NCBI GenBank assembly: GCA_964035545.1
Contig: OZ037765.1
Coordinates: forward strand, 12,658,698-12,722,697
Reading direction: 5' to 3'
From: Bugula neritina
Taxonomy: Eukaryota > Animalia > Bryozoa
Length of the DNA stretch: 64,000 nucleotides
Position 1 is the stretch's first letter; each line of letters starts with the position of its first letter. This document shows, in pieces, positions 20,120 through 40,952 of the stretch. Under the pieces are notes generated by a model. It was given only the letters and a program-made list of their open reading frames with translations, made no database searches and was not told where the DNA came from. The position numbers and the translations under genes were made by a program.

Positions 20120-20689
20120 AACCAACAACAAATTCTACAGAGAAAATGAAAACAAGCATACTGTACTGTTATATTATTATCTATTTTAAATATGCAAAAG
20201 AAAACAGGTAAAAATTAGGAGCCACTAAACCAAATTAAAAATATTGAAACTTATAGTTGTACTTAATCTTATGGTTATTTGCTAATTCAATAAAAGCACA
20301 GACTTTGTGCAACTATTCTCTGCTCAGCCTGCCTTAAATTAAAATTCAGACCAGGCATTGATGAGTTGTGAACAAATCAGCTTGCATAACCTACAGTCTC
20401 AAAAAGTTTGCAACAATTACCATAATGATATTGATAATCATAATGCGCTAAATTATTCATGTGACTATTTTTATAAAATTACAACTTACACCGTACACGT
20501 AGAGTTAGTTTTAGACATACTGATACCTAAAAATACTTATATATATACTTATAGTTATAGTGGTAGAAACAATATGGATATACAATTAATACTCATATTA
20601 TATTATATTTATTATTATAAATGGTAACTTAAACTGTAAGTACTAGTCAACTAGTAGTTAGTAAGTTACACTTACAGTCAGTGTTACTG

Positions 20690-20706
20690 ACTAGTAGTAG
20701 TAGTAC

Positions 20707-20798
<92 letters not shown>

Positions 20799-20816
20799 AT
20801 ACTAATAGTAGTAGTA
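20690..20816. repeat. (AGT)n microsatellite
   Basis: Seen directly. Confidence 0.95.
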
Positions 20817-20899
20817 ACAAATTGCCATCAACTTCAGGCTAAATCTACAACATTACAAATTGAAATACATGATATTTGATGATATAAGTTGAAAAGTTC

Positions 20900-21650
20900 A
20901 AATCATAACGTTATAATAATGAAACGGTTAATGGGGAGATGCACTTTTTAGAAATGAACCATAATCAAAACGAAAATGATAACGGTAATTATGTTCTGAT
21001 AAAAGAAGTAATAGTCATAGTGATAGCTGCAAGAATCGGGATGCGAGTTTATATCAGAGTGGTATATATACCACACTGGTTTAAATTTTCCCCCGATGGC
21101 CAATAGTTTATTCAATCTGTAGCATGCACGCACCAACTACAAACAAATGCATTTGCCTGCTACAAAACATCTGTTCAAAGGTGTATACGTATAGGGAAAG
21201 TAACTCTATAACAACAACAACCGAGTTGCATGGTAAACAAATGGCTTTATAAGCAGCTCCAAGTTAGGGGTGATTGAGTGCAATAGTTTGCAATTCTCAA
21301 GTTTAGAGTTGGGTGTTCAAAGTTCCAATCATCGAACTCAATAATATCTATTCCAGCTCAGTGGTTTCAATCTAAACCTCCAACTCCAAACTTGAGAGCC
21401 GCAAACTACTACACTTAGTCACTCCCGATTTAAAGCTGCTTATAGAACTATTTGTAATAAACTCTATTATAAATAACAACATAATTCTTACACACACAAA
21501 AGTTCGAAGTTGAAAAAGGAGTTACGGTGCCTCCGAAAATGTAGTCTAGAATACATGTAGATTTAGGTGTAAGGTCAAGGTTACATCTATCGAAACTTCC
21601 CAAGTTGTCCAGTGTGAGTATTAGATTAAGATTTAGTACGAGTATCAGTA
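20900..21650. promoter_or_regulatory. Probable bidirectional promoter region between MYO19 and Rab24
   Basis: The genes are divergent. Both first coding exons are preceded by splice acceptors (ctgtag near 20136 on minus; ttgcag at 24342 on plus), so 5'UTR exons lie between them. CpG is locally more frequent here. TSS positions are inferred. Confidence 0.45.
21247..21445. mobile_element. MITE with long imperfect terminal inverted repeats (tataagcagc...gctgcttatag)
   Basis: About 70 bp of each end is inverted-complementary; second copy at 25667-25821. Confidence 0.8.
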
Positions 21651-24363
21651 TGAGTGAATCATTATCATAATCATACACTACAGTTATTGTTTTATTTTTG
21701 TTATTGTCACGATCACTGTACCTAAAGCTCTGTTAGTGACCTACACTTAGTATGACTTAATTGTATTTACAGTACTAACTAAAAGTTAAACTTGAAGTTA
21801 ATGTTAGGCTATTTTATTTACTTTTACTTTTAGTTTTAGTTTTACAATTAGTATTACTATTAGTATTACTTTTAGTTCAAGTGCTCAGCCCTATAGTTAT
21901 ATTTATGAATAGAATTATATGATTCAGACTTATAGTTGTTATAATATATCACAGGTAAATTTGAACTAATGAATAACTATAAGTAGATTATAAAATTAAA
22001 TGTTAATTCTAAAACTGACACGTAAAAGTTTGAAATTGGTGAATTTCAATTTTATTACATTTACTGTTAGTGTTACTGTATCAGTGTAAGACTAAGAGTA
22101 AGTGTGCGTGTATTGGTTTTAGACTAGTCTAGCATTCGTATTAGTATTACTGCATTACTATTACTTATACTTATACTGCTATTACTATTAGCTTAAGCTT
22201 CTGCTTGTATTTATTATAATTGTATTTATTATCATTATAATTATTATGATTTATTAATTATTTTTATGCTTATACCTATAGTTGTACTTATATAGTTATA
22301 TGTTTCTGAGCTGGGTCTCAGACAATTAATCATTTAAATTCGGTTGGTGACATGTCAGTTGTCAACTTTGACAAAATGAGAATCAATTTTATTTTTAGTT
22401 ATGACTTTTGTAGTTTCTGAATAAACTTCAAAATGGGGACAATTAATTTGTAAGGCTCACTTTATTTTAACTGTAAGAGTCAGCTCTGTGCATGAAAGAC
22501 AGACATCTATGAGTTCTTGCTGCTTGTTCTTATGTAATCATTTTAAGGGCTTAAATAATTTAACTCTTTATAATTATCTGCGTTATTATGTAACAGTTCA
22601 TTATACAATTGTAAACTTTACCATTAACACATAGTTGTTTTTAGTACTATTCTTAAGTTGTTTAACCATTTATACTGGCACACCATAAAGTTTCACATCT
22701 GTCGCCTCTCCTCTACCTCTATAAACAAATGATTTCTAGCTATAAATTGGCTGTAGCTTTTGTAGTTGCTAGCATTCTACTGGTGTATTTTGTGCTGTGA
22801 ACATATTCTACACTTTCAATAAAACATATATTCTTGTTGAAGCAGTCTATACAGATTATTGGAGTTTTGTATCTAACTAGTGGGTTAAGCTAGCAGTAGC
22901 AAGAAGTAAACCAATAGTAAGTGTACTTTAGTCTACAGAGCTGTAGTGAGAGAGATAATCACCATGATCGGTCCTTTTGACTTTCAGTTTTATTGCTGCT
23001 GTATATAAAAATGTGGTTGTACTTGTAATAATAATTAGTAATTGTAATATAAATAATTAAATTTCATATTGACAAACTACTAGGAGTATTAGTATTTCTT
23101 TTAGCTGAAAACCTAAACCACTAACTGACAACTGTACAGGGACAAGTGGCTCTCTTGTGTTTTTTTCTTAATTTTCTTCTTCAAGTTGTATTAAAGTTTT
23201 ATTATAATATTTTGTTCTATTTATTTTTTATGAAGCTATCTCTCTAAACTGGGGCTCTATTTGGGTCAAGGCACACATCTTTGTTGTATTCAAATGCCTT
23301 TATTTTCATTTATTGGCTTTTCTAACAAGTAATGCCCACTGAAACCACTCAAACCTGTTTAGTTGCAGTAACATGCAGTTTGATTTTGAATACATAGCCT
23401 GGAGTCAGTGTTAGCAAACAACTGGTTGCTAAATAAAACTTGTTTGTAACTTATGAACTGGTAATTTAAAAATTATGACAAATAAGGTTACTGCTGTTAA
23501 GATCTATTGCTTCCGTATTAATTTATAATGAAACTGACATTCTAGAATCTATATGCTTTAGTATATTAATATTGGAGAGAGAATTTTTTTCACTCCATTA
23601 TCTTTAAAGCTTACGTATCTAAAATAGGCAGTTTCATTGTATATTTAACAGGATTTAGCTAATCTAGTTTAAATGAAAAGTTGATTGTTCATTGAAGTTG
23701 TATGTAATGTCACTATAGCATCATTCTATCTGGCATAATATTACTTTCTCTGTGCTAGCCTGGTTGTCATTTTGAATAATTTGAGAAAGCATATACCAAT
23801 CTATATACCAAATGGCAACCATACAGTGAAAACATGCAATTTCAAAAAGATGGGAATGTGCTTTGTTGATAGCAAAGATTGTTACACCAACTTTTCACTT
23901 CACATGTGACTGCTGTATTTACTCAATACCCTTTACAACGGCTAGTTTCTTTAACATGAGTGATTAGTGTTCTATGTTAATAGAACACTTCAAAATATTT
24001 ATAAACACTTCAAAATAATATCTACATACAAATAAGCTTTAATGTATAGTCGTATTTTGATTTCAGTGAAGACTTTTAGAGGCAGGTTAATATCATGTTT
24101 CCAATTTTTCAGCCGTCAGTTTATATACATATATATGATTATTATACATCACTGGTACACAACTTTCATATTTAGTATAAACAACTAAAATTATTAATAT
24201 TATAATTATAGTAGATATTTTATCAAATTTATCCCATAATTGTCACATTTGCATTTTGTATTCACTTAGAATTGAGTATTCACAAAAACCTGTCACTCAG
24301 TTCAACAATAAAATCTGACAATACATGTTATTTTGGTTGCAGTTTTCTAGTGCATGTGCAAAC

Positions 24364-27300
24364 ATGGCTGCCTCAAAAATTGATATGAAAGTTGTCCTCC
24401 TTGGTCAAGAATACGTTGGTAAAACATGCCTGGCACATAGATGTATTCACAATAGATTTGGCTCCGTGGCAAGTTATCAAGCTGTAAGTATCATTAACAT
24501 GTATTGAATATGATTTACCAGGAAGTGGGAATGTTTGTTGCGTCTAAATATCCTTCTATGCTTGATGTCAACAACTGTCAGAGTTGTTTAGGGATAATGC
24601 AGCTTTGAATCATTTAGATCTTTCTGATTGTGGCTGTAATGTTTTAGGACAAAAGATAGTATTTCAGTATACCAGTATGATACATTCTTTAGTTCAGTCA
24701 CAAGTAAATCAGTTATAACAATATCAAATCACGTGCTAGATGAACTTTTGTACTAGGAATATTTTGTAAGTTGAGTGGTGCAGCTGTTTTTGAACCAATT
24801 AGAGCATTTAGAAAGTTCCAAAAAGATGATTTCTTAAGTAATTATAATTATACTTAGTTCATACTATTATATCATTAAGGTAAGGCTTACAGAGTCACTG
24901 TTTTTCTACTCATTAAAGTCACAGTGATGCTATATGTAGCCTTTAAATCAATTGCTCTACTTTTCAATGGTAGCCTATACAATATACAATATACATGATT
25001 GGTTCTGCAGCCATGGCTCTGCATTGGTCTAGGAAGCATTATACATGAAAAAGTGATTTTTGCTTAGCTGTATTTATAGATTTAGACAGTATTTATAAGG
25101 ATCTTTCTGTTTTGCATAAGAGGTCCAGTTGGGGGGAATTATTTATCTCCACCTTGGAGAAACTTGAAAGTTGTTGAAGATTTTCAATTTTGGTCCAGGG
25201 CATAGCTAAGTTCACCTAACTAAAACAAAAGTCTTTCTTATCAAATTAAATAATTAACTTTGCTCACATAACATAACACTATCTTTTCTAGAATGTCCCA
25301 AACACTCTATTTATTCTTTATACCTGCCACTCTGAGTTACTGTGTCCTTTAATAATATCATGCAGGAGTTTTTATAGAACACTTTTGCATATGAAGATAA
25401 TGATAATACAAATTACACTGTATCTACTGAGATTCCAATGTTTATGATAGAATGAATAGTGCCATGTTGTCTCTTTAGTTTTCATTGAACAAACTAAAAT
25501 GGAAGTGAAAAACATTTTAGGAATTTAAATTTTTGTTTAAATACCAATTAAGAAGTTATAATGTAAAGGTTTGCAGTATAATTGTAAGGTTAATGCTGTC
25601 TACACTTTCCTATCAGATAAATAACAAGCTGACATTAATAAACAAGAATTAGATATTGGAAATTTGCTGTAAGTAGTCCTGATTTGGGGTGGCTGAGTGC
25701 TGTAGTTTGGGGTCTCGAGTTTGGAGTTAGGGGTTCAAAGTTCCAACCTAAACTCCCAACTTTAAACTGAAGAACCTCAAACTACTGCACTCAATTACAC
25801 ACAACTTGGGGCTGCTTATAGCAATTATCTAGATAGTGCTGAGACTGGATTATGTAATAATGAACTGTGAGACCACCACCTCACCTCAACCCGTCCCACA
25901 CCACCCCTGAGAAATAAAATCTGTCTCTAGTTTAGCAATAAACACTATGCTATCTTATCGTACACACAACATGGTATGGAAGTAGTTGAGGTCATCATGA
26001 CTGCAACCAATCACTGCAGTCAGCAGCTGAAATCAGTGACTAGTAAACAGACATATTATGGAAATCCGGACTAGCGTAGAGGTTGCGGCAGCTGACTTCA
26101 TAGTTGGGATAAGTTTTAACTTAAAACGACGGTGTGAACTTGCATGTATTTTTACAATGAAGACTTTACCCACAGTCCAAAGATATTGTAATGGACATCA
26201 ACATGGAGGAATTCAGCAACATGTTGCCCTCCATTCTGATACACTGCGTCCACCACCACTGCAATTTGGTTACTTGGGATTTCAACCCATGAAGATTGTA
26301 ATGCTGGGTAAAGCTGGTACTGGGAAGACCAGTATGCTAATAAAATTTTACAATAGGAATTTTAATCTAGAATCTTCAGCTTCGTCTACAGTACGTTTCC
26401 TATACAATGTACTTTATGAAGAATTATATTATGAAAAAAGTTATTTATAGTTTTTCTAATTTAGTTACACAATTTATATATTTAATAAGATTAGTGTTAC
26501 CAAAAATAATATATTATCTGAAAATTGTAAACTACAAATATCTTACAGTGTAGCTGGCTCTTCACTTAGCCTCTAATATATCTTTCTCTCATCTAAGATT
26601 ATTTTAGTTAATAAAATTGATTCAACTTTGGAACCTTGTAGATGTCTTTTAAATTATAAGTTGTTGACTTGCGGTAGTTTGTTTATTAATAAGCTGTGAG
26701 TTAACAACTTTAGGTCTGTCTACGTTTAGAAATTTCCATGAAAAACAACATCATTTTATGTGTCCATCATTCTTTTAAAAATTTGGTAATTAGTTTTACA
26801 CATTCAGAAAATATAGATAAATTCTAGTATATTTTTAATATTCTTTTTAGACCATTGGAGCAGCTTTTGGAGGCAAAAAGGTGACAGTTGATGGCAAATC
26901 AGTACTCATGGGCGTTTGGGTATGTACTCTAGCTCTAGCATTATATTATTAGGCATTTTTATTTAGATTGTGATTATTAAAAAGAGCTAAACTATTGTTT
27001 AGTCACTTTAAAATGTGTTGGCAGTCATCTTTTATATAGGACAGACAACTCTTCATGCTACAATTTACTAATGCCTACTCTGCTTGTAAAATTGTTAGAA
27101 AGCCTAAGTACTGAGTGCAATTTAAAGTACGTTTACTACGGATAATATTCTTGATATTAAATGGTGTTATTGCATCAGCTTGAGTAATTCGAGGTAACTG
27201 GATAAATAAATTTTACTATTAAAAACTTGCTGGAACAAAGATTTATATTCTCCTCAATGCCAATGCTACCATAATAAATGTGAAACTAATAGCTATTTAA

Positions 27301-29367
27301 AGAAAGATGATTGTTTTTCAAACAGTTCTTTAGGATTTATTTGTACTTGCTTAAGTTTTTGAAAAGTTATATTACTATTTTTGAATTTTGTATTTTATTT
27401 ATTCTATTTGTTTGACTATTTTATTTTATAGCAAAGTAGAAAAGTTTGAAATGAAATTTTGTAAGTAAGATGTAATGAAAGCCACCCAAATACTAGGCTG
27501 GGTCTTCGGTTTACTCTTGCATTCTCACATGCTTGTTTCCTGCTTTTATTTTTTTATTTTAGTTCATTTAGTAAAATTTCAGTGAAAGGTATACAAGATA
27601 TTTGATTTGTCTATGGTTAAAATTCCAGTTTTTAGCTTTTCTTCTCCAAAGCATCACTGAGAACCGGAACAGTCTTGACTTGGTGCTCAGCAGTTTTAAT
27701 GTTTGATTCACATAGATGCAAATTTTATGCGAGCACCCAAAACCATGGGGCTATGACTGCTTTATCAGTTTATATTTTGTTCCCTGCTACTGGAGTATCT
27801 TAAATTCTTGCTAACTGCATAGGATTTTTGAGCTGTAATTTGAATTTGTCTCCTCATAAAGTGTATCTAGTAACTTGTTTACATTACAGGATACAGCTGG
27901 TTCAGAGAGATATGCAGCCATGTCTAGAATATATTACAGGTCTGCGAAAGCAGCCATTGTATGCTATGACAGTATGGATCCAGCTAGCTTTGATATAGCT
28001 AAAAATTGGATTAACGAGCTAAAAACAGCTGAAGAGGTACAATTGTCTTGGGGTGGTGTAGCATTATTCATTACTCAACCAAACAATAGCTTTTTTCTAG
28101 TACTAAATGCTTCCTATTTTAACATTTCAGTGCCAAATTATTGAAGGCTTCAAATTTTTAATTTTTAATTCCAGCTATGTTTTGGTTTTCGAAGAAGATT
28201 CTGCTTTCTTGAAGCAATAACTATGTTCATTATATATTACAGCATACCATATATATCATATTTTAACTCACATCATCAAAATTATACTTTTTAGTTTATT
28301 TACAACATCTGTAATATCATTAGTTATTTTTTGTCTAAAATTTAAGAAACTTTGGGATTGTTAACCAGCACCGGAGTAACACATCAATCTGCTCATAAAT
28401 GCGTAAAATCTGTTGCTGGGTTCACTAACTCTATTTTCAGTATAATGTTTGCACATTTTTTTTAGGAATGCAAATTATATTTAGTTTGTACCAAAAAGGA
28501 TTTAATAGATAAAGATCCAAAAGCTAGGAAAGTTGACTATTATGACGCCCAGGACTATGCTACTGCAGTTGATGCCTGCATGTTTGAAACTTCCAGTAAA
28601 ACTGGTGAAAATATATGTGAGTAGTTATGTGAACATATTAAACTTAGCTTTTATTACAAGTATATTGTTATAGTAGAGACAATGTACTTATATTTTATAC
28701 TAGCTTACATTGCGCTTCCATATAAAGTATAATATTATGTTTTCTCTTTTCTGAGAATTATTATTGTCATGGAGTGTTTTGGCATGTCTTTGCATGTTGT
28801 AAGTAACAACATTTTCTTAATCTAATCCAATACTGTGTGGTATTTACTGTAGCTGAGCTGTTTTACAAAATAGCTGAAGATTACTTACAGAGAAAGCATC
28901 AGCAACATTCATCAGGTTAGTTTGCTGTGCTTTGCTAACTAATATATGTTTTGTGCAATAACAGAGTATGCATTATAATATAAAATATACTTATTTATAT
29001 AAACTTAACTCAAGTTCCTTTCTAAGAAGTTTCATTTTGCAACAAGACTTTATAAATGGCCTAGACTTTTGAGTTTTTATTTTGTTTTTTATTTTGATAG
29101 ACTTGATTAGCTTGGGTGTCATTAAAAACTAGATGTTGCAATATATAGTATTGTGTAGTTACTGTATTATGTTTGCTATACTACGCATTAAACAGTCCAA
29201 AATAGGTTAGCAGCAAACTTACTAATAACCTACTGTGAGTCAAAGAACCTGCTGCAAGTGCCTGTGTAAAGTGTCCACCTATACTTTCTGTAGATGTCAT
29301 CCAGTTAACTGAGCACAGAACTCCCAGTAATAAGCCACGCTGTGCTTGCTGGCAGTCATCAAAGTGA
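24364..29367 (+). CDS. RAB24: Ras-related protein Rab-24 (isoform using exon 1A)
   Basis: Exons 24364-24483 ([13 protein letters not shown]), 26851-26919 (TIGAAF...GVW), 27890-28036 ([27 protein letters not shown]), 28466-28616 ([13 protein letters not shown]), 28853-28915 ([10 protein letters not shown]), 29294-29367. DTAGSE with Ser at the catalytic Gln position, EYVGKT and the TKxD G4 box are Rab24 hallmarks. Confidence 0.93.
25667..25821. mobile_element. Second copy of the ctataagcagc MITE
   Basis: ctgtaagtag...gctgcttatag with the same internal gagtttggagtt/gttcaaagttccaa motifs as 21247-21445. Confidence 0.8.
26058..26390 (+). CDS. RAB24: Alternative first coding exon (1B) of Rab24 with its own P-loop
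   Basis: ORF ends [34 protein letters not shown] followed by a phase-0 donor gtacgt, compatible with the exon at 26851. Confidence 0.75.
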
Positions 29368-34092: not shown

Positions 34093-35545
34093 ATGGAACA
34101 GCTGACATGTTTCATTCTGCTAATTATCTGTTTTGTAGTGGTGAGTATTAATTAGATGTTTTACTAGTATAAGTGATCATGAATAATCTGAGAAAATGTT
34201 TCCATTTGAAAATGAATTTTCTGATGCTTGCACAGTTAAATCCATAAAAATAAGTTTAACACTCCTTTTTTTAAAAAGAAGCTAAGTGTAAATTATTATT
34301 GGGTCTTATATCATGAAATCAGACTTTATTAGCCAGCTTTTGCATGAGTCTAAAAATTTTTTGCTGATTTACTAAAATTTAGTACACCAACTATTTTAGT
34401 CTCCCGCCTCATTGGTGGCTAGCAAAAATTTTATGTGGTATAATTATAGTATAAATTAGTTTGCAATGTTATGGTCAAAATTGCAAGCGAAATAATATGA
34501 AATTGTGCAGTTAAAATAATATATTGCATAGTATTACAATTGTTTTACTGTCATAATAAATAAAATCTTCTTGTTCAGACCATGGCCAATGTTCCTAATA
34601 AAAAAATTTATTACTAGCTTTGAGGCATATGATTGTGTAACTTAGGAGTAATAATAAACTTATGACAGGAAAATAAGCATGGAGTAAATTGATGCGATGT
34701 TCACCTGATTCTACAGCAAACTTACTAGCCTGTGTATCCTGAACACCAAAGTAACCAACATAGCATGTATGTTTCATTATGCAGGCACATGGTCAAGGAT
34801 CAACTACTCTGAAACCTTGCAACCCAAAATTCTCGGATTCAGCTACCTGCAATATGGACCCACTCTCTTGTTCAAAACCGGAAAGATTACCATACTGTCA
34901 AAGGTATTGTGGCCTGTGCTCAGAAACAGTGACGTCTCCTAAACTCACAACTGTCGTTACTGTGGAAAATTGTGTTGACGTTTCTCCATTATGTCTATTC
35001 AGGAAAAATGAGTGTGTAAGTGACGTTAATGTTCAGAAGGTGTGTAAAAAATCTTGTGGTCTTTGTACCGAACCAACTACAGCAAAACCGACTACAGTTG
35101 AGCCAACTACAATAGGTAATAATCATATAAATGATATGAATCCACTCTCTTGTTCAAACCCGAAAAAAATGCAATACTGTCAAAAGTATATTGTGGCTTG
35201 TGCTCAGAAAAAGCAAAATCACCCAAACCTCAAACCCCAAATTCCAAACCTCGAACTTCACATGGTCAAGTACTAACTACTTTGAAACCTTGCAACCCGA
35301 AAATTCCCGATTCAGCTACTTGTGTTATGAACCCACCCTCTTGTTAAAAACCAGAAAAAATATCATATTGCCAAAGATATTGTGGCCTGTGCTCAGAAAC
35401 AGTGATGTCCTCTAGACTCACAACTGTCGTTAGTGTTGAAAAATGTGTTGGCATCGCTCCGTTGTGTACATTGTTGAAAAATGAGTGTGAAAGTAACTCT
35501 GTTGTTTAGAAAGAGTGTAAAAAGTTTTGCGGTCTTTGTTGCTAA
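34093..35545 (+). pseudogene. Paralogous ShKT gene: signal exon, two intact ShKT modules, then three decayed modules; either a short secreted protein or a pseudogene
   Basis: Exon 34093-34140 MEQLTCFILLIICFVV; exon from 34785; frameshift near 35188; in the downstream frame TAA (35345) and TAG (~35507) replace Ser and Gln codons; that frame ends CKKFCGLCC*. Confidence 0.75.
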
Positions 35546-36390
35546 TTGCCAGGAAATTGCAAAAGTTGGCGAGAAGGTTTTGATTTGAACAGCTGTTCCA
35601 TTACTGCCTATCATAGCATACCTTAATTCTTCTATACCTTTGAAGTTGGTTTCTGGAAAAGTCACAGAAAAAATCTACCCTGTATGAAAAATATAAACTG
35701 TCGGTCACAATAATTTTGTGAGGAATGTATCAACATGCAAACCAAATGTAGGAACAATTTTCAGTTCTTGAAACTCTGCTATTCAGTCAAAGATAACAGT
35801 TGAGTTTTAGGAGTGATGAATGTTTGAAGCATGGCAGTCTGTGGTCAATTATTGTTCAATAGCATTCACGAAAGCACAATATTAGGTTTATAAAATTCTT
35901 ATACATAATGTAAGATTAGTTTAATATTTTGAATATATATGTAGGTGTTAAGAGCCTACCACAATCAGACTTTAATAGGGTCTGAAATTACAGAGCAATT
36001 TTAATGGAATTGAAAGCAGGAAATTATGATTTTGTGAGTTATTTTTATCATAAATTGACTAGTTATAGCAATGCTTTATGCGTTTAGCAGAGAAATTTTC
36101 ATTGGAATCATGGTTCCATTGCCATATTTTTTGATGTGATAGCAAAAATGTTGCCTAAAATTAGATTGAAGATATTTTTATCACAGCAATACATGCTTAG
36201 GTAACCCTTTGCTTAAATATGTTAGGTCTGAGATAGTTAAACTGCTCAGACTTATAGGATAATATCTGGACTTGTGTTTCTGGTTCACTAAGGGCGCTTT
36301 TGGATCATCAGTTTTCGGATCGTTAGTTAGATCATCTGTAAACATATGGCTCAAACTTAGCTTTTTAATTTTTTTTAGCATTTCCTACAG

Positions 36391-37238
36391 AAAGTTGGAC
36401 TTGTTTTTCAAGTTAACTCCATATGCTTATTGTATGGAGGAAGATAAGCATAAAAATGATGGAAGCATTCTGATTGGTTCAGGCAATGGCCTTCAAACTA
36501 CAAATGGAAGTACAACAACCGACCTCGTTACATCAATTATTGTAACTGGCTTCACACAGATAAACCAGACTAGTATAGCCTTTGTGGATTACCATGAAGA
36601 CTGTATGAAACTATTAAATCGTATTGACAACAGCATTGAAACTTTTGCAGGAACATGTGGGTCTACTGGCTAGGCAGAGGGTGAAGTTGGGGTGGGGAAA
36701 ATGTATCACCAATATGGGGTTCAAGTAGATGTTAGGAACTCAAACATGTTATTAATAACAGATGTTGGAAACAAGGCATTAAGATCTGTAGATATGACAA
36801 CAGGAGAACTGAGTACAGTTATCAAGTCTTGTGGTTTTAATTATCCTCGAGGAATACGTTGGTTTAACCAAAGTTTGTTGATGGCCAATTACTCTGGTTA
36901 TATTTCTCAATTCAGCTGGTCAAATGACGGTACTGTAAGTAATACTGGTTTAGCTGGTTCCAAACAAAGTGATGCTTATGGTAAATTCAGTGAGGCCAGA
37001 TTCTATACACCTTATGGCATAGAAAAGGTGGGAGACAATCACTACCTTGTTGCTGACTCTGCTAATAGAAAATTCAAGCTAATGGATATGAAGAAACAAA
37101 TAGTTGGCCCAGTCTGCTTTAAAGGAGAAACCCCCTGTACAATCAGCAGTTTTTTTTCAGATCAACCTGTGTCTTTGCTGAATGTAGAAGGAATAGTTTA
37201 TGTTGGGCTGAAAAATGGAGCAATATATAAACTGAAAT
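36391..37238 (+). pseudogene. NHL-repeat/beta-propeller exon with a single in-frame TAG (36671-36673)
   Basis: ORFs 36272 and 36692 are in the same frame: FAGTCGSTG*AEG, LLITDVGNKALR, FNYPRGI, ARFYTPYGI...YLVADSANRK are NHL-type motifs. Acceptor at 36390, phase-1 donor after 37238. Candidate upstream exon 36148-36200 (phase 2 matches). Confidence 0.7.
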
Positions 37239-37307
37239 GTAAATAATTATGTTTGGTACTTACTTATAATGATAAAGTACCTGAAGCAATAAACCTTCAC
37301 AGTACTC

Positions 37308-37322
37308 CTACACACACACACA

Positions 37323-37382
<60 letters not shown>

Positions 37383-37448
37383 CACACACACATATATATA
37401 TATATATTCATATATTTATATATACATATATTTATATATACATATATT

Positions 37449-37529
<81 letters not shown>

Positions 37530-37580
37530 TGTATATACTGTATATACTGTATATACTGTATATACTGTATATATATACTT
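37308..37580. repeat. Compound (CA)/(CGCA)/(TA)/(TATATACTG) microsatellite
   Basis: Seen directly. Confidence 0.95.
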
Positions 37581-37793
37581 ATTATAGTGATGAGGGTTGA
37601 ACCAAATTTACTCAGCATTTTATCATAAAGATATTTTACTATACTTGCCGTGTATAAGTAATAACTTTAGTAAGTTACTCAAATGTACATGAAGAGCTCA
37701 ACTATAAGAAATCTTTGAGATAAACTTCAAGTTACATATTTATTGTAGCTAAACTCTGCACATCGTATTTAGTAAATTTTTTTCTATTTACAG

Positions 37794-38482: not shown

Positions 38483-39989
38483 AGTCTAGCATAGTAAGGA
38501 GACTGTCTTTTAAGTCACAATACGATGTGACATGTGATAATATTAGTAATACCAACAGCAGAAAGCTTCTGAATGTAGTTCTATCTCACCGCAGAGATCA
38601 ACTTCAAAGCATCTGCTCTCAAAGTAAGTGTACAGTTTGATATCTCTAAGGTGACAAGGTACTTTGTAACATAACTTAACTCATCACGTTCTCATTACAG
38701 GCTGTACCATGTCTACTAGTATACAGCCATACCATGACTGTACCAATGATCTCCTGACCGTCTACTGGCCAACTGATAAGCTGTATCTTGCCACCATCTT
38801 AGAACCTCCGGCAGTGTTGAGTGATGAACTGAAAAAGAGGTTGAGTAACTCTGGCACTGTAGGACTCTCTGAAATATTTTTCCCATTTCACTCTCCTCCG
38901 TAAGTATGCATTAGCAATTAATAGCTAGTCTATAACTTTGTACTTGCGGCTCATATTTTTTGTCATAGCAGAAGGGAATAACTCTTTAATATATGTTTAT
39001 TATTTAAAAGTCATCTTTTCTCACTTATTTGATCACAGTAAAAGTATACTTCTAGATGGTACCAGACCACATGTTGTTGAGGTTTAGGTGGCTAAGAGGC
39101 TTTCTACAAATAGAACTATTTTAATATAGGCTGATAGCTGCTAAGAAGAACTCTAAAGGTGAAGCTGTAAGGGTTGTACTTTACTCTTCCTGTATTGATA
39201 AGAAAAAGTCCTATGATGGTGACTCCGACACCTGTTCATAATTCCTGAGATGTTATCAGTTGAGCTGATGTTTAATGGAACTTATATATGTCATTGTGAC
39301 ATAGATAATACGTAATATAATTTAATTTTCAGCTAATATTGAAAAAAATTAACATAATTGATTTTTCATTTAATTTCTACCAAATATGTTTCAAATTTTA
39401 AATTACTAACTTTAATTGTTGGATGATGCTACAACATCTTTTAATGAGTTTTTTTGGAAGAATATATTATATTTTTATATAATTGTCTATCTGCTGCAAT
39501 TTCATAAAATAATTAGCAATGTGAATTTTCAAAGAAATCAGACCAATCGTTGTTATAATACAAGCATATAACTGTATGAATGTGTGCGTGTGTAGGTGTG
39601 GTGTGTGTGTGCTGTGTGCGTGTGACTGCGTGAGTGTGAGAGTAAGTGTGTGTGTATATGTGTGTGTGCAGGTATGTGTGTGTGCAGGTATGTGTGTGTG
39701 CAGGTATGTGTGTGCGTACGTGTGTGTGTTGGGTGTGTGTGTTTGTAATTCGGTTGCATCATTGACTGGTACATGTATCATAAAGCTAGAAATTCATGTG
39801 TGTTCGTGCGTGTGTGTGTTTATGTGCATGTGTGCGTGTGTGTGTGTATGTGTTTGTGTGTGTATGTGTATGTGTGTATGTGTGTATGTGAGTGTGTGTG
39901 TATGTGTGCCTATGTGTGTAGGTGTGTATGTGTGTGTATGTGTGTATGAGTGTGTGTGTGTGTATATGTGTGTATGTGTGTATGTGGGT

Positions 39990-40041
<52 letters not shown>

Positions 40042-40115
40042 GTATGTGTGCATGTATGTGTGTATGCGTGCGTGTGCGTGCGTGTGCGTGCTGTGTGTGT
40101 GTGTGTCGGTGTGTT

Positions 40116-40203
<88 letters not shown>

Positions 40204-40952
40204 CGTGTGTGTTTGTCTGATGCTATAGATAGCTCTGATTAGCAAATTTAATCATTATCTCTATCATAGCAACAGACTATGTCAATTAATGATCAACCAA
40301 GTTTTTATTAACTTTCTTTTACAAAAAGTTCACATAATTTATAAATAATATATCAGCATCAATTTTTATTACCAATTATGTAATATCTATTATAGAATAA
40401 AACTTCAAGTAGCAATACAAAGTATAGCGAGAGAATTTACAATTTAAATAGCAGTTCTTTGAGAAAAATAATTTCGAATAATCTAAATGAGTAGTTTTCT
40501 TTGTTCCTCCTATTGTAGAAGTTTAAGCACCACAAGTATAGTCACATGTGTTGCTACAAGAGTGTACACTACAATTATATAAAAAAACAAAAAGCTATAA
40601 TTGATACGAGACCACTTGGTAACATGGTACTTATGTTTGAAAATTCTACTGCAGTTCGATGAAAGAATATTAGACAGAATAAATACTCAATAATAAATCA
40701 TAAGTAATAAATGATAAATACTCAATTATAATTAACAACTAACAACTGATAAATAATTAAAAATCAATAATGAATACTAAGTAAATAATAATTAATAATA
40801 AGTTCCAGTTGCACACAATCTATTCTATAATAATATATATATATATATACATGTGTATATATATATATATAAATGTATATATATATATATATATATATCT
40901 GTTCTGTGCTGATGAAGGGACAAACCCCGAAACAGCTGCTGTCCACAGATTG

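Follow-up and report, generated by a model that had tools for sequence, protein, structure and literature searches.

The Rab24 gene of the bryozoan Bugula neritina, analysed here within a 64,000-nucleotide stretch of contig OZ037765.1 (hereafter the window), has two first exons that each carry a P-loop. We consider it very probable that the second of these, exon 1B, is a real and ancient alternative first coding exon of Rab24, and that the gene encodes two proteins that share exons 2–6. The reading frame of exon 1B is conserved at the codon level, its donor is joined to exon 2 in assembled RNA from a close relative, and counterparts stand at the same position in nine further lineages.

Structure of the Rab24 gene

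Rab24 lies on the + strand in six exons, every one with canonical AG/GT borders. It is single-copy in the 216-Mb genome: in sequence searches made exon by exon, exon 1A, exon 1B and the body of exon 3 each have one close match only. The features of the locus, in window coordinates and with intron length in nucleotides (nt), are as follows.

24364..24483 (+): coding part of exon 1A, with the Rab24 start, beta1, the P-loop GQEYVGKT, alpha1 and the first half of switch I
25681..25860: hairpin-shaped dispersed repeat in intron 1, resembling a miniature inverted-repeat transposable element or a short interspersed element; exon 1B RNA contigs break here
26058..26156 (+): upstream stretch of the open frame, not conserved, probably a 5′ untranslated leader
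26157..26288 (+): exon 1B leader, with its own ATG and 44 residues ending in GFQP, preceding the GTPase fold
26289..26390 (+): exon 1B core, 34 residues with beta1, the P-loop GKAGTGKT, alpha1 and the first half of switch I
26391..26850 (+): intron between exons 1B and 2, 460 nt, 92% identical to the relative and retained in some RNA contigs
26851..26919 (+): exon 2, shared, with TIGAAF (second half of switch I) and beta2–beta3
27890..28036 (+): exon 3, shared, with DTAGSERY (G3/switch II, Ser at the Gln site); Pfam Ras match at an expectation value (E) of 3.9e-13
28466..28616 (+): exon 4, shared, with G4 CTKKD and G5 ETSSK
28853..28915 (+): exon 5, shared, entered through the RNA junction 28616>28853; its open end at 28915 fits 29294
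29294..29367 (+): exon 6, shared, with the C-terminal tail ending RCACWQSSK and the stop codon

Exon 1A (40 residues) ends in phase 0 at a GTAAGT donor at 24484, exon 1B ends in phase 0 at a GTACGT donor at 26391, and both lengths are divisible by three. The initial annotation of this DNA, made from the letters alone, had described two P-loop exons with phase-0 GT donors at the homologous position before TIGAAF, and those borders hold (exon 1A 24364–24483, exon 1B to 26390, exon 2 from 26851). Exon 2 has the acceptor tttttag directly before TIGAAF and the donor gtatgt directly after GVW. The + strand of the window contains two real P-loop frames only, both in the Rab24 gene. They are 36% identical over 25 residues (pairwise E=9e-6), and both match Pfam Ras positions 1–29; the 34-residue 1B core is matched from profile position 1 with E=2.6e-5, above the curated cut-off.

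The gene bears the marks of the Rab24 family. Exon 1A encodes GQEYVGKT, with Glu-Tyr at Ras positions 12–13, and Ser replaces the catalytic Gln in DTAGSERY of exon 3, a replacement common to both isoforms; both features had been recognised at the outset and are borne out here. TIGAAF in switch I, CTKKD, ETSSK and two tail Cys followed by extra residues are likewise present. Exons 2–4 are 52–74% identical to Rab24-like loci of other eukaryotes, and exon 1A shares 53–65% identity with first exons of Rab24 in other animals. At the P-loop, the GKAGTGKT of exon 1B departs from the Rab24 signature G-x-E-Y-x-G-K-T, in which Glu and then Tyr or Phe occupy Ras positions 12–13. In the tail (29294–29367), the two Cys have an Ala between them and are followed by five residues. 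The mammalian Rab24 tail, CCHH, is closer to the standard prenylation end than that of B. neritina.

Purifying selection on exon 1B

The 1B frame is under purifying selection. We aligned contigs of a close relative (L007–L011) to the window across 20665–27489, and found identities of 95.8% in exon 1A, 98.6% in exon 2 and 96.1%, without gaps, in the 1B core, next to 88–92% with many indels in the introns. The frame from 26157 to 26390 differs by nine silent and five replacement changes, none of them at second codon positions (six and four in the leader, three and one in the core). The ratio of replacement to silent change, each per site (pN/pS), is 0.16 (binomial P=0.001), close to the 0.19 of exon 1A, and the bias towards silent change is absent from the two other reading frames of the same interval. 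The relative keeps the 1B ATG, frame and donor, and a 12-nt insertion within the exon, in the leader part, is in frame.

The length of the N-terminal extension had been put at up to 77 residues. The frame is indeed open from 26058, but only the 44 residues from 26157 are conserved, and we rejected the longer extension in favour of the shorter. An 11-nt deletion in the relative at 26074, just upstream of 1B, breaks the longer frame and removes the 26058 start, and gene callers begin the relative's open reading frame (ORF) at the equivalent of the 26157 ATG. Substitutions across 26058–26156 follow no codon pattern.

Exon 1B in other lineages

Direct searches with window 1B as query (a word-based protein search and an exhaustive representative search with 78 residues) returned the close relative and three weak matches only, which we take for chance; they were fruitless because window 1B is too divergent. 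Rab24 loci were taken from public metagenome contigs with exon 3 as query and then scanned exon by exon. In two lineages (L020 and L024/L025), a canonical first exon is followed by an ATG-started P-loop exon that ends in Thr directly before a phase-0 GT donor, and then by exon 2; the two 1B exons are 68% identical (L020 vs L024, E=2e-12). A word search from L020, followed by a profile of 1B exons, led to L077 and seven more ORFs. These seven score at E 1e-12 to 1e-22, and the next matches, which are other GTPases, begin at 2.5e-4. Exons 1A, 1B and 2 also stand together on L077 and L083, and 1B is followed by exons 2–4 on L082, L084 and L085. The contigs on which 1A, 1B and exon 2 are all present number six.

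There are 11 distinct 1B sequences in all, each just upstream of Rab24 exon 2 and each with its own ATG and a leader of 19–44 residues (19–34 in the other lineages). The core consensus is [DE]VETMK[IV]I[VL]LG[KR][AS]NIGKT[SA]LTRRFVHNEF..[ST]EST, with the P-loop G-K/R-A/S-N-I-G-K-T and the donor directly after the last Thr. Between lineages, pS is 0.7–1.0, so that silent sites are saturated, and introns cannot be aligned; the ATG, the frame and the donor are still kept, and pN is below pS in every between-lineage 1B comparison. Exon 1B evolves faster than exon 1A: between L020 and L077, 31 of 52 residues are identical in 1B and 38 of 40 in 1A. We read exon 1B as an old, conserved alternative first coding exon, and the first-exon pair appears to be restricted to this animal group. 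The initial annotation had made the proposal depend on conservation of 1B in relatives, and the exon is kept both in the close relative and in many distant lineages.

Two observations concern individual contigs of this set. L048 carries a Rab24 first exon like the human or mammalian one and probably comes from a host or a contaminant; every step after the first batch tblastn excluded it. In the L085 lineage, L088:841-929 reads GIWAVS after exon 2 where others read GIWVSS, which may reflect an allele or an alternative donor.

Origin of exon 1B

The less derived 1B exons share 50–59% identity with canonical Rab24 first exons, more than with other Rabs, and their start, V-E-T-M-K, mirrors the K-V-D-M-K of exon 1A. 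Both features fit a tandem duplication of the first coding exon, which we infer occurred in the common ancestor of these animals. In a first-exon tree, a branch (94/93) separates the five 1B rows from the others, and the 1A exons of 1B-bearing lineages, with G-K-T-C in common, form a group (89/86), though the alignment has only 33 columns and the branches are long. A tree of exon 3 (48 columns) gives no resolution on whether the 1B-bearing lineages form a single clade, and the B. neritina Rab24 branch in it is long; Rab24 of this species is fast-evolving overall. Of the two origins raised in the initial annotation, exon duplication or capture from another Rab, duplication fits, within the limits of the short first-exon alignment, and recent capture from a paralogue was rejected, the best other match in the genome being 40–48% identical with E ≥0.026.

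RNA evidence

Transcripts were examined in two RNA-Seq runs, X1 and X2, of one sample ('symbiont metagenome') from a close relative, as assembled contigs and not as raw reads of this genome. The sample differs from the window by ~4% in exons and ~8–10% in introns. Every intron of the Rab24 gene is seen spliced in these contigs, which identifies them as RNA. The two junctions proposed for checking at the outset are both present, each with GT..AG borders: 24483>26851 in X1 and X2, and 26390>26851 in X2. The latter is real, though it comes from one contig, which spans 25736–26390 and 30 nt of exon 2. The 1A junction contig has the same 30-nt overhang on exon 2, since a k=31 graph leaves such an overhang where two paths merge. 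In X2 the 1B contig has a mean depth of 21.6 and the intron behind it 2.6–8; these are contig means on which the two libraries of the one sample disagree, and they give no usable isoform ratio. No junction from 24483 into the 1B region is reported in the contigs, which cannot show absence and include intron-retaining RNA.

At the repeat in intron 1, many DNA contigs of run X3 match in part and accumulate at 25684–25821, and the RNA contigs begin at 25705 and 25736. The X2 contig with the junction from exon 1A to exon 2 is 2282 letters long and extends ~2 kilobases (kb) upstream of 24300; it represents either a very long 5′ leader or upstream RNA joined unspliced.

Predicted isoforms and their control

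Two mRNAs with exons 2–6 in common would give proteins with the same second half of switch I, switch II, G4, G5 and Cys tail that differ in everything before TIGAAF. Isoform A, with its start at 24364 and the canonical P-loop GQEYVGKT, is predicted to have ~207 residues. Isoform B, with its start at 26157, the 44-residue leader and the P-loop GKAGTGKT, is predicted to have ~245; it would bring its own beta1, P-loop, alpha1 and first half of switch I behind a poorly conserved leader. The idea that one gene makes two GTPases stands as far as both junctions occur in RNA and 1B is conserved, but the pair are alternative first coding exons with their own ATGs and not interchangeable internal cassettes.

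At Ras positions 12–13, the Glu-Tyr of exon 1A becomes Ala-Gly in window 1B and Ala/Ser-Asn in the other lineages. Judged from its sequence, the 1B P-loop is a conventional Rab-type loop without the P-loop tyrosine. Mammalian Rab24 has low intrinsic GTPase activity and is mostly GTP-bound, and its P-loop Tyr17 is reported to be phosphorylated and is tied to the low activity (reviewed in PMC7756361). The P-loop swap would remove both the counterpart of mammalian Tyr17 and the Glu-Tyr pair. The Rab subfamily regions SF1 and SF2, which have a part in partner specificity, also lie in the exchanged stretch. Because the Tyr, the Glu-Tyr pair and SF1/SF2 are all exchanged, nucleotide handling and partner choice should differ between the isoforms.

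Transcripts that begin with 1B would need a 5′ end of their own, which could come from a promoter within intron 1 or from spliced-leader trans-splicing; in the second case an acceptor within intron 1 could yield the 1B mRNA from the same primary transcript. An extended GATA motif, CTGATAA, occurs at most 350 nt upstream of the 1B ATG in six of seven lineages, often as TTATCAGTGT or ACTGATAAGT (CTGATAA/TTATCAG on either strand), within the following regions.

CTGATAA/TTATCAG regions: L020:2245-2595, L077:660-1010, L024:1994-2344, L082:405-755, L083:5193-5543, L085:110-460

There are eight sites upstream of 1B and six in the other 34 kb, a count that none of 20000 shuffles reaches, in a test framed post hoc. 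The enrichment suggests a separate regulatory region for 1B, and the motif may be a conserved control element of the second isoform.

Alternative readings of exon 1B

Several observations weigh against an ancient, translated exon 1B. It is missing from four further animal Rab24 loci (L014, L015, L017 and L022), all with short first introns. CTGATAA is absent upstream of 1B in the window, where there is only GATAAG at −49, as part of GGGATAAGT at 26105–26113. Window 1B itself gets 20.5 bits from the profile of the other lineages' 1B exons and 27.4 bits from the 1A profile; it is so divergent that its orthology rests on position and exon structure. In the RNA, the 26390>26851 junction rests on one assembled contig from one run of a related strain, the sister run X1 contains the 26391–26850 interval in unspliced form only, and the 1B contig reaches at least 420 nt upstream of the ATG, across several upstream ATGs that would hamper translation if this 5′ stretch is real leader. 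The evidence for isoform B consists of genomic sequence and RNA contigs.

The low score on the 1B profile is what would be expected if window 1B were not the GKANIGKT exon of the other lineages at all, having arisen independently in its own lineage, either through a second duplication or as a piece captured from another Rab. The best solved-structure matches of window 1B are Rab11 and Rab7 (E ~1e-3), and it sits on a very long branch, so that its grouping with the other 1B exons may be long-branch attraction. Such a separate gain seems unlikely to us. We take window 1B for the same exon on account of its shared place between 1A and exon 2, the ATG and leader of its own, the G-K-A with which its P-loop begins, as in the other lineages, and the equally shared S-T with which it ends before a phase-0 GTA donor. 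The genome holds no donor paralogue, the rest of this species' Rab24 is fast-evolving too (as the long exon 3 branch indicates), and a single origin takes fewer events.

Somewhat less probable still is that 1B is spliced but untranslated. Transcripts from the 1A promoter would sometimes skip the 1A donor and use the donor at 26390, the 1A frame would stop in the intron, and the resulting non-productive mRNA would regulate or waste Rab24 output. No separate 5′ end is seen for 1B, whose contig extends far upstream, and the same libraries are rich in unspliced RNA, with the unspliced path alone in X1. An untranslated exon would leave the codon-level purifying selection unexplained, however, along with the 1B ATG and its Kozak-like context, which are kept in all lineages. 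It would also fail to account for an in-frame indel within the exon next to an out-of-frame one just outside it, or for a P-loop, alpha1 and end residue kept across saturated divergence.

That 1B is a chance or decayed pseudo-exon and its junction contig an assembly artefact can practically be set aside: the junction is seen in a single contig that reaches 30 nt into exon 2, and chance alone should produce a bare GxxxxGK[ST] about two times per 64 kb (an estimate), but the overhang is as a k=31 graph gives it and is matched at the 1A junction, the GT..AG borders are exact, the Pfam Ras match is above the cut-off, and selection and wide conservation contradict chance.

Other features of the window

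Downstream of Rab24, the interval 34779–35350 (+) contains open frames with repeated Cys-rich units (CQRYCGLCSE, VCKKSCGLCTE) and Thr/Pro-rich linkers between them, which look like ShK-type domains of a secreted protein. Two long open frames of 133 and 184 residues lie at 36272–37246 (+), also downstream of Rab24, and the 184-residue frame resembles an NHL-like beta-propeller repeat protein. The intervals 37250–37620, 39460–40250 and 20650–20840 are taken up by long microsatellites of (CA/TG)n and (TA)n and by a tract of (CTG/AGC)n.

Relation to known systems and significance

Isoforms made by a choice between tandem duplicated exons are a known class (PMC9741552), and RAB6A/RAB6A′ arise by a substitution-type alternative splicing event in a tandem duplicated exon (PMC1950890). 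RAB6A and the Rab24 gene described here are alike in having two homologous tandem exons, either of which is joined to common exons, so that the two GTPases are distinguished by a single part of the G domain. In RAB6A the exons are internal and nearly identical (three residues differ), and they lie near switch II. Unlike RAB6A, the Rab24 pair is the first coding exon, ~36% identical and with an ATG in each copy, and the swap takes in the P-loop, alpha1 and the first half of switch I together with a new N-terminal leader. The pair fits tandem duplicated exon substitution in that the exons are homologous neighbours with the same flanking exon and the same phase; being first in the coding sequence, it has a downstream common exon only.

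Human RAB37 has isoforms with alternative N-terminal segments (PMC9714508), but what is described there is variation at the N terminus and no conserved choice between two complete P-loop exons, and for RAB24 the same source gives intron retention only, with nothing comparable. Isoform A carries every hallmark of canonical mammalian Rab24 (Erdman 2000 and Ding 2003, as cited in PMC7756361), among them the E-Y P-loop, ETSSK and two tail Cys with further residues behind them. Full-text literature searches found no description of a second P-loop exon in any Rab24. New here are the gene (Rab24), the swapped part (P-loop, alpha1 and half of switch I), the position of the pair as first exons, which brings a second start codon, and how deeply the arrangement is conserved.

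Rab24 is odd among Rabs in its poor GTP hydrolysis, the Ser at the catalytic Gln site and a phosphorylatable P-loop tyrosine, and the purpose of these oddities is unclear. The gene described here is a natural experiment in which either an odd or a conventional P-loop goes with one common set of switch II, G4, G5 and tail, both versions being kept under selection across deep lineages, and comparison of the natural isoforms would reveal the contribution of the Rab24-type P-loop. Cases in which exon choice changes the catalytic core of a small GTPase, as opposed to a tail or a surface loop, are few, and automated gene models that contain isoform A only will miss the second protein. We propose tentatively that the moss-animal group has long kept a second Rab24 with a conventional P-loop and a leader, possibly switched by its own GATA-type region, for example in the gut, in a tissue-specific change of the GTPase cycle and partners. 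If this is true, a natural P-loop swap would alter the GTPase cycle and the partners of an autophagy-linked Rab in a tissue-specific manner.

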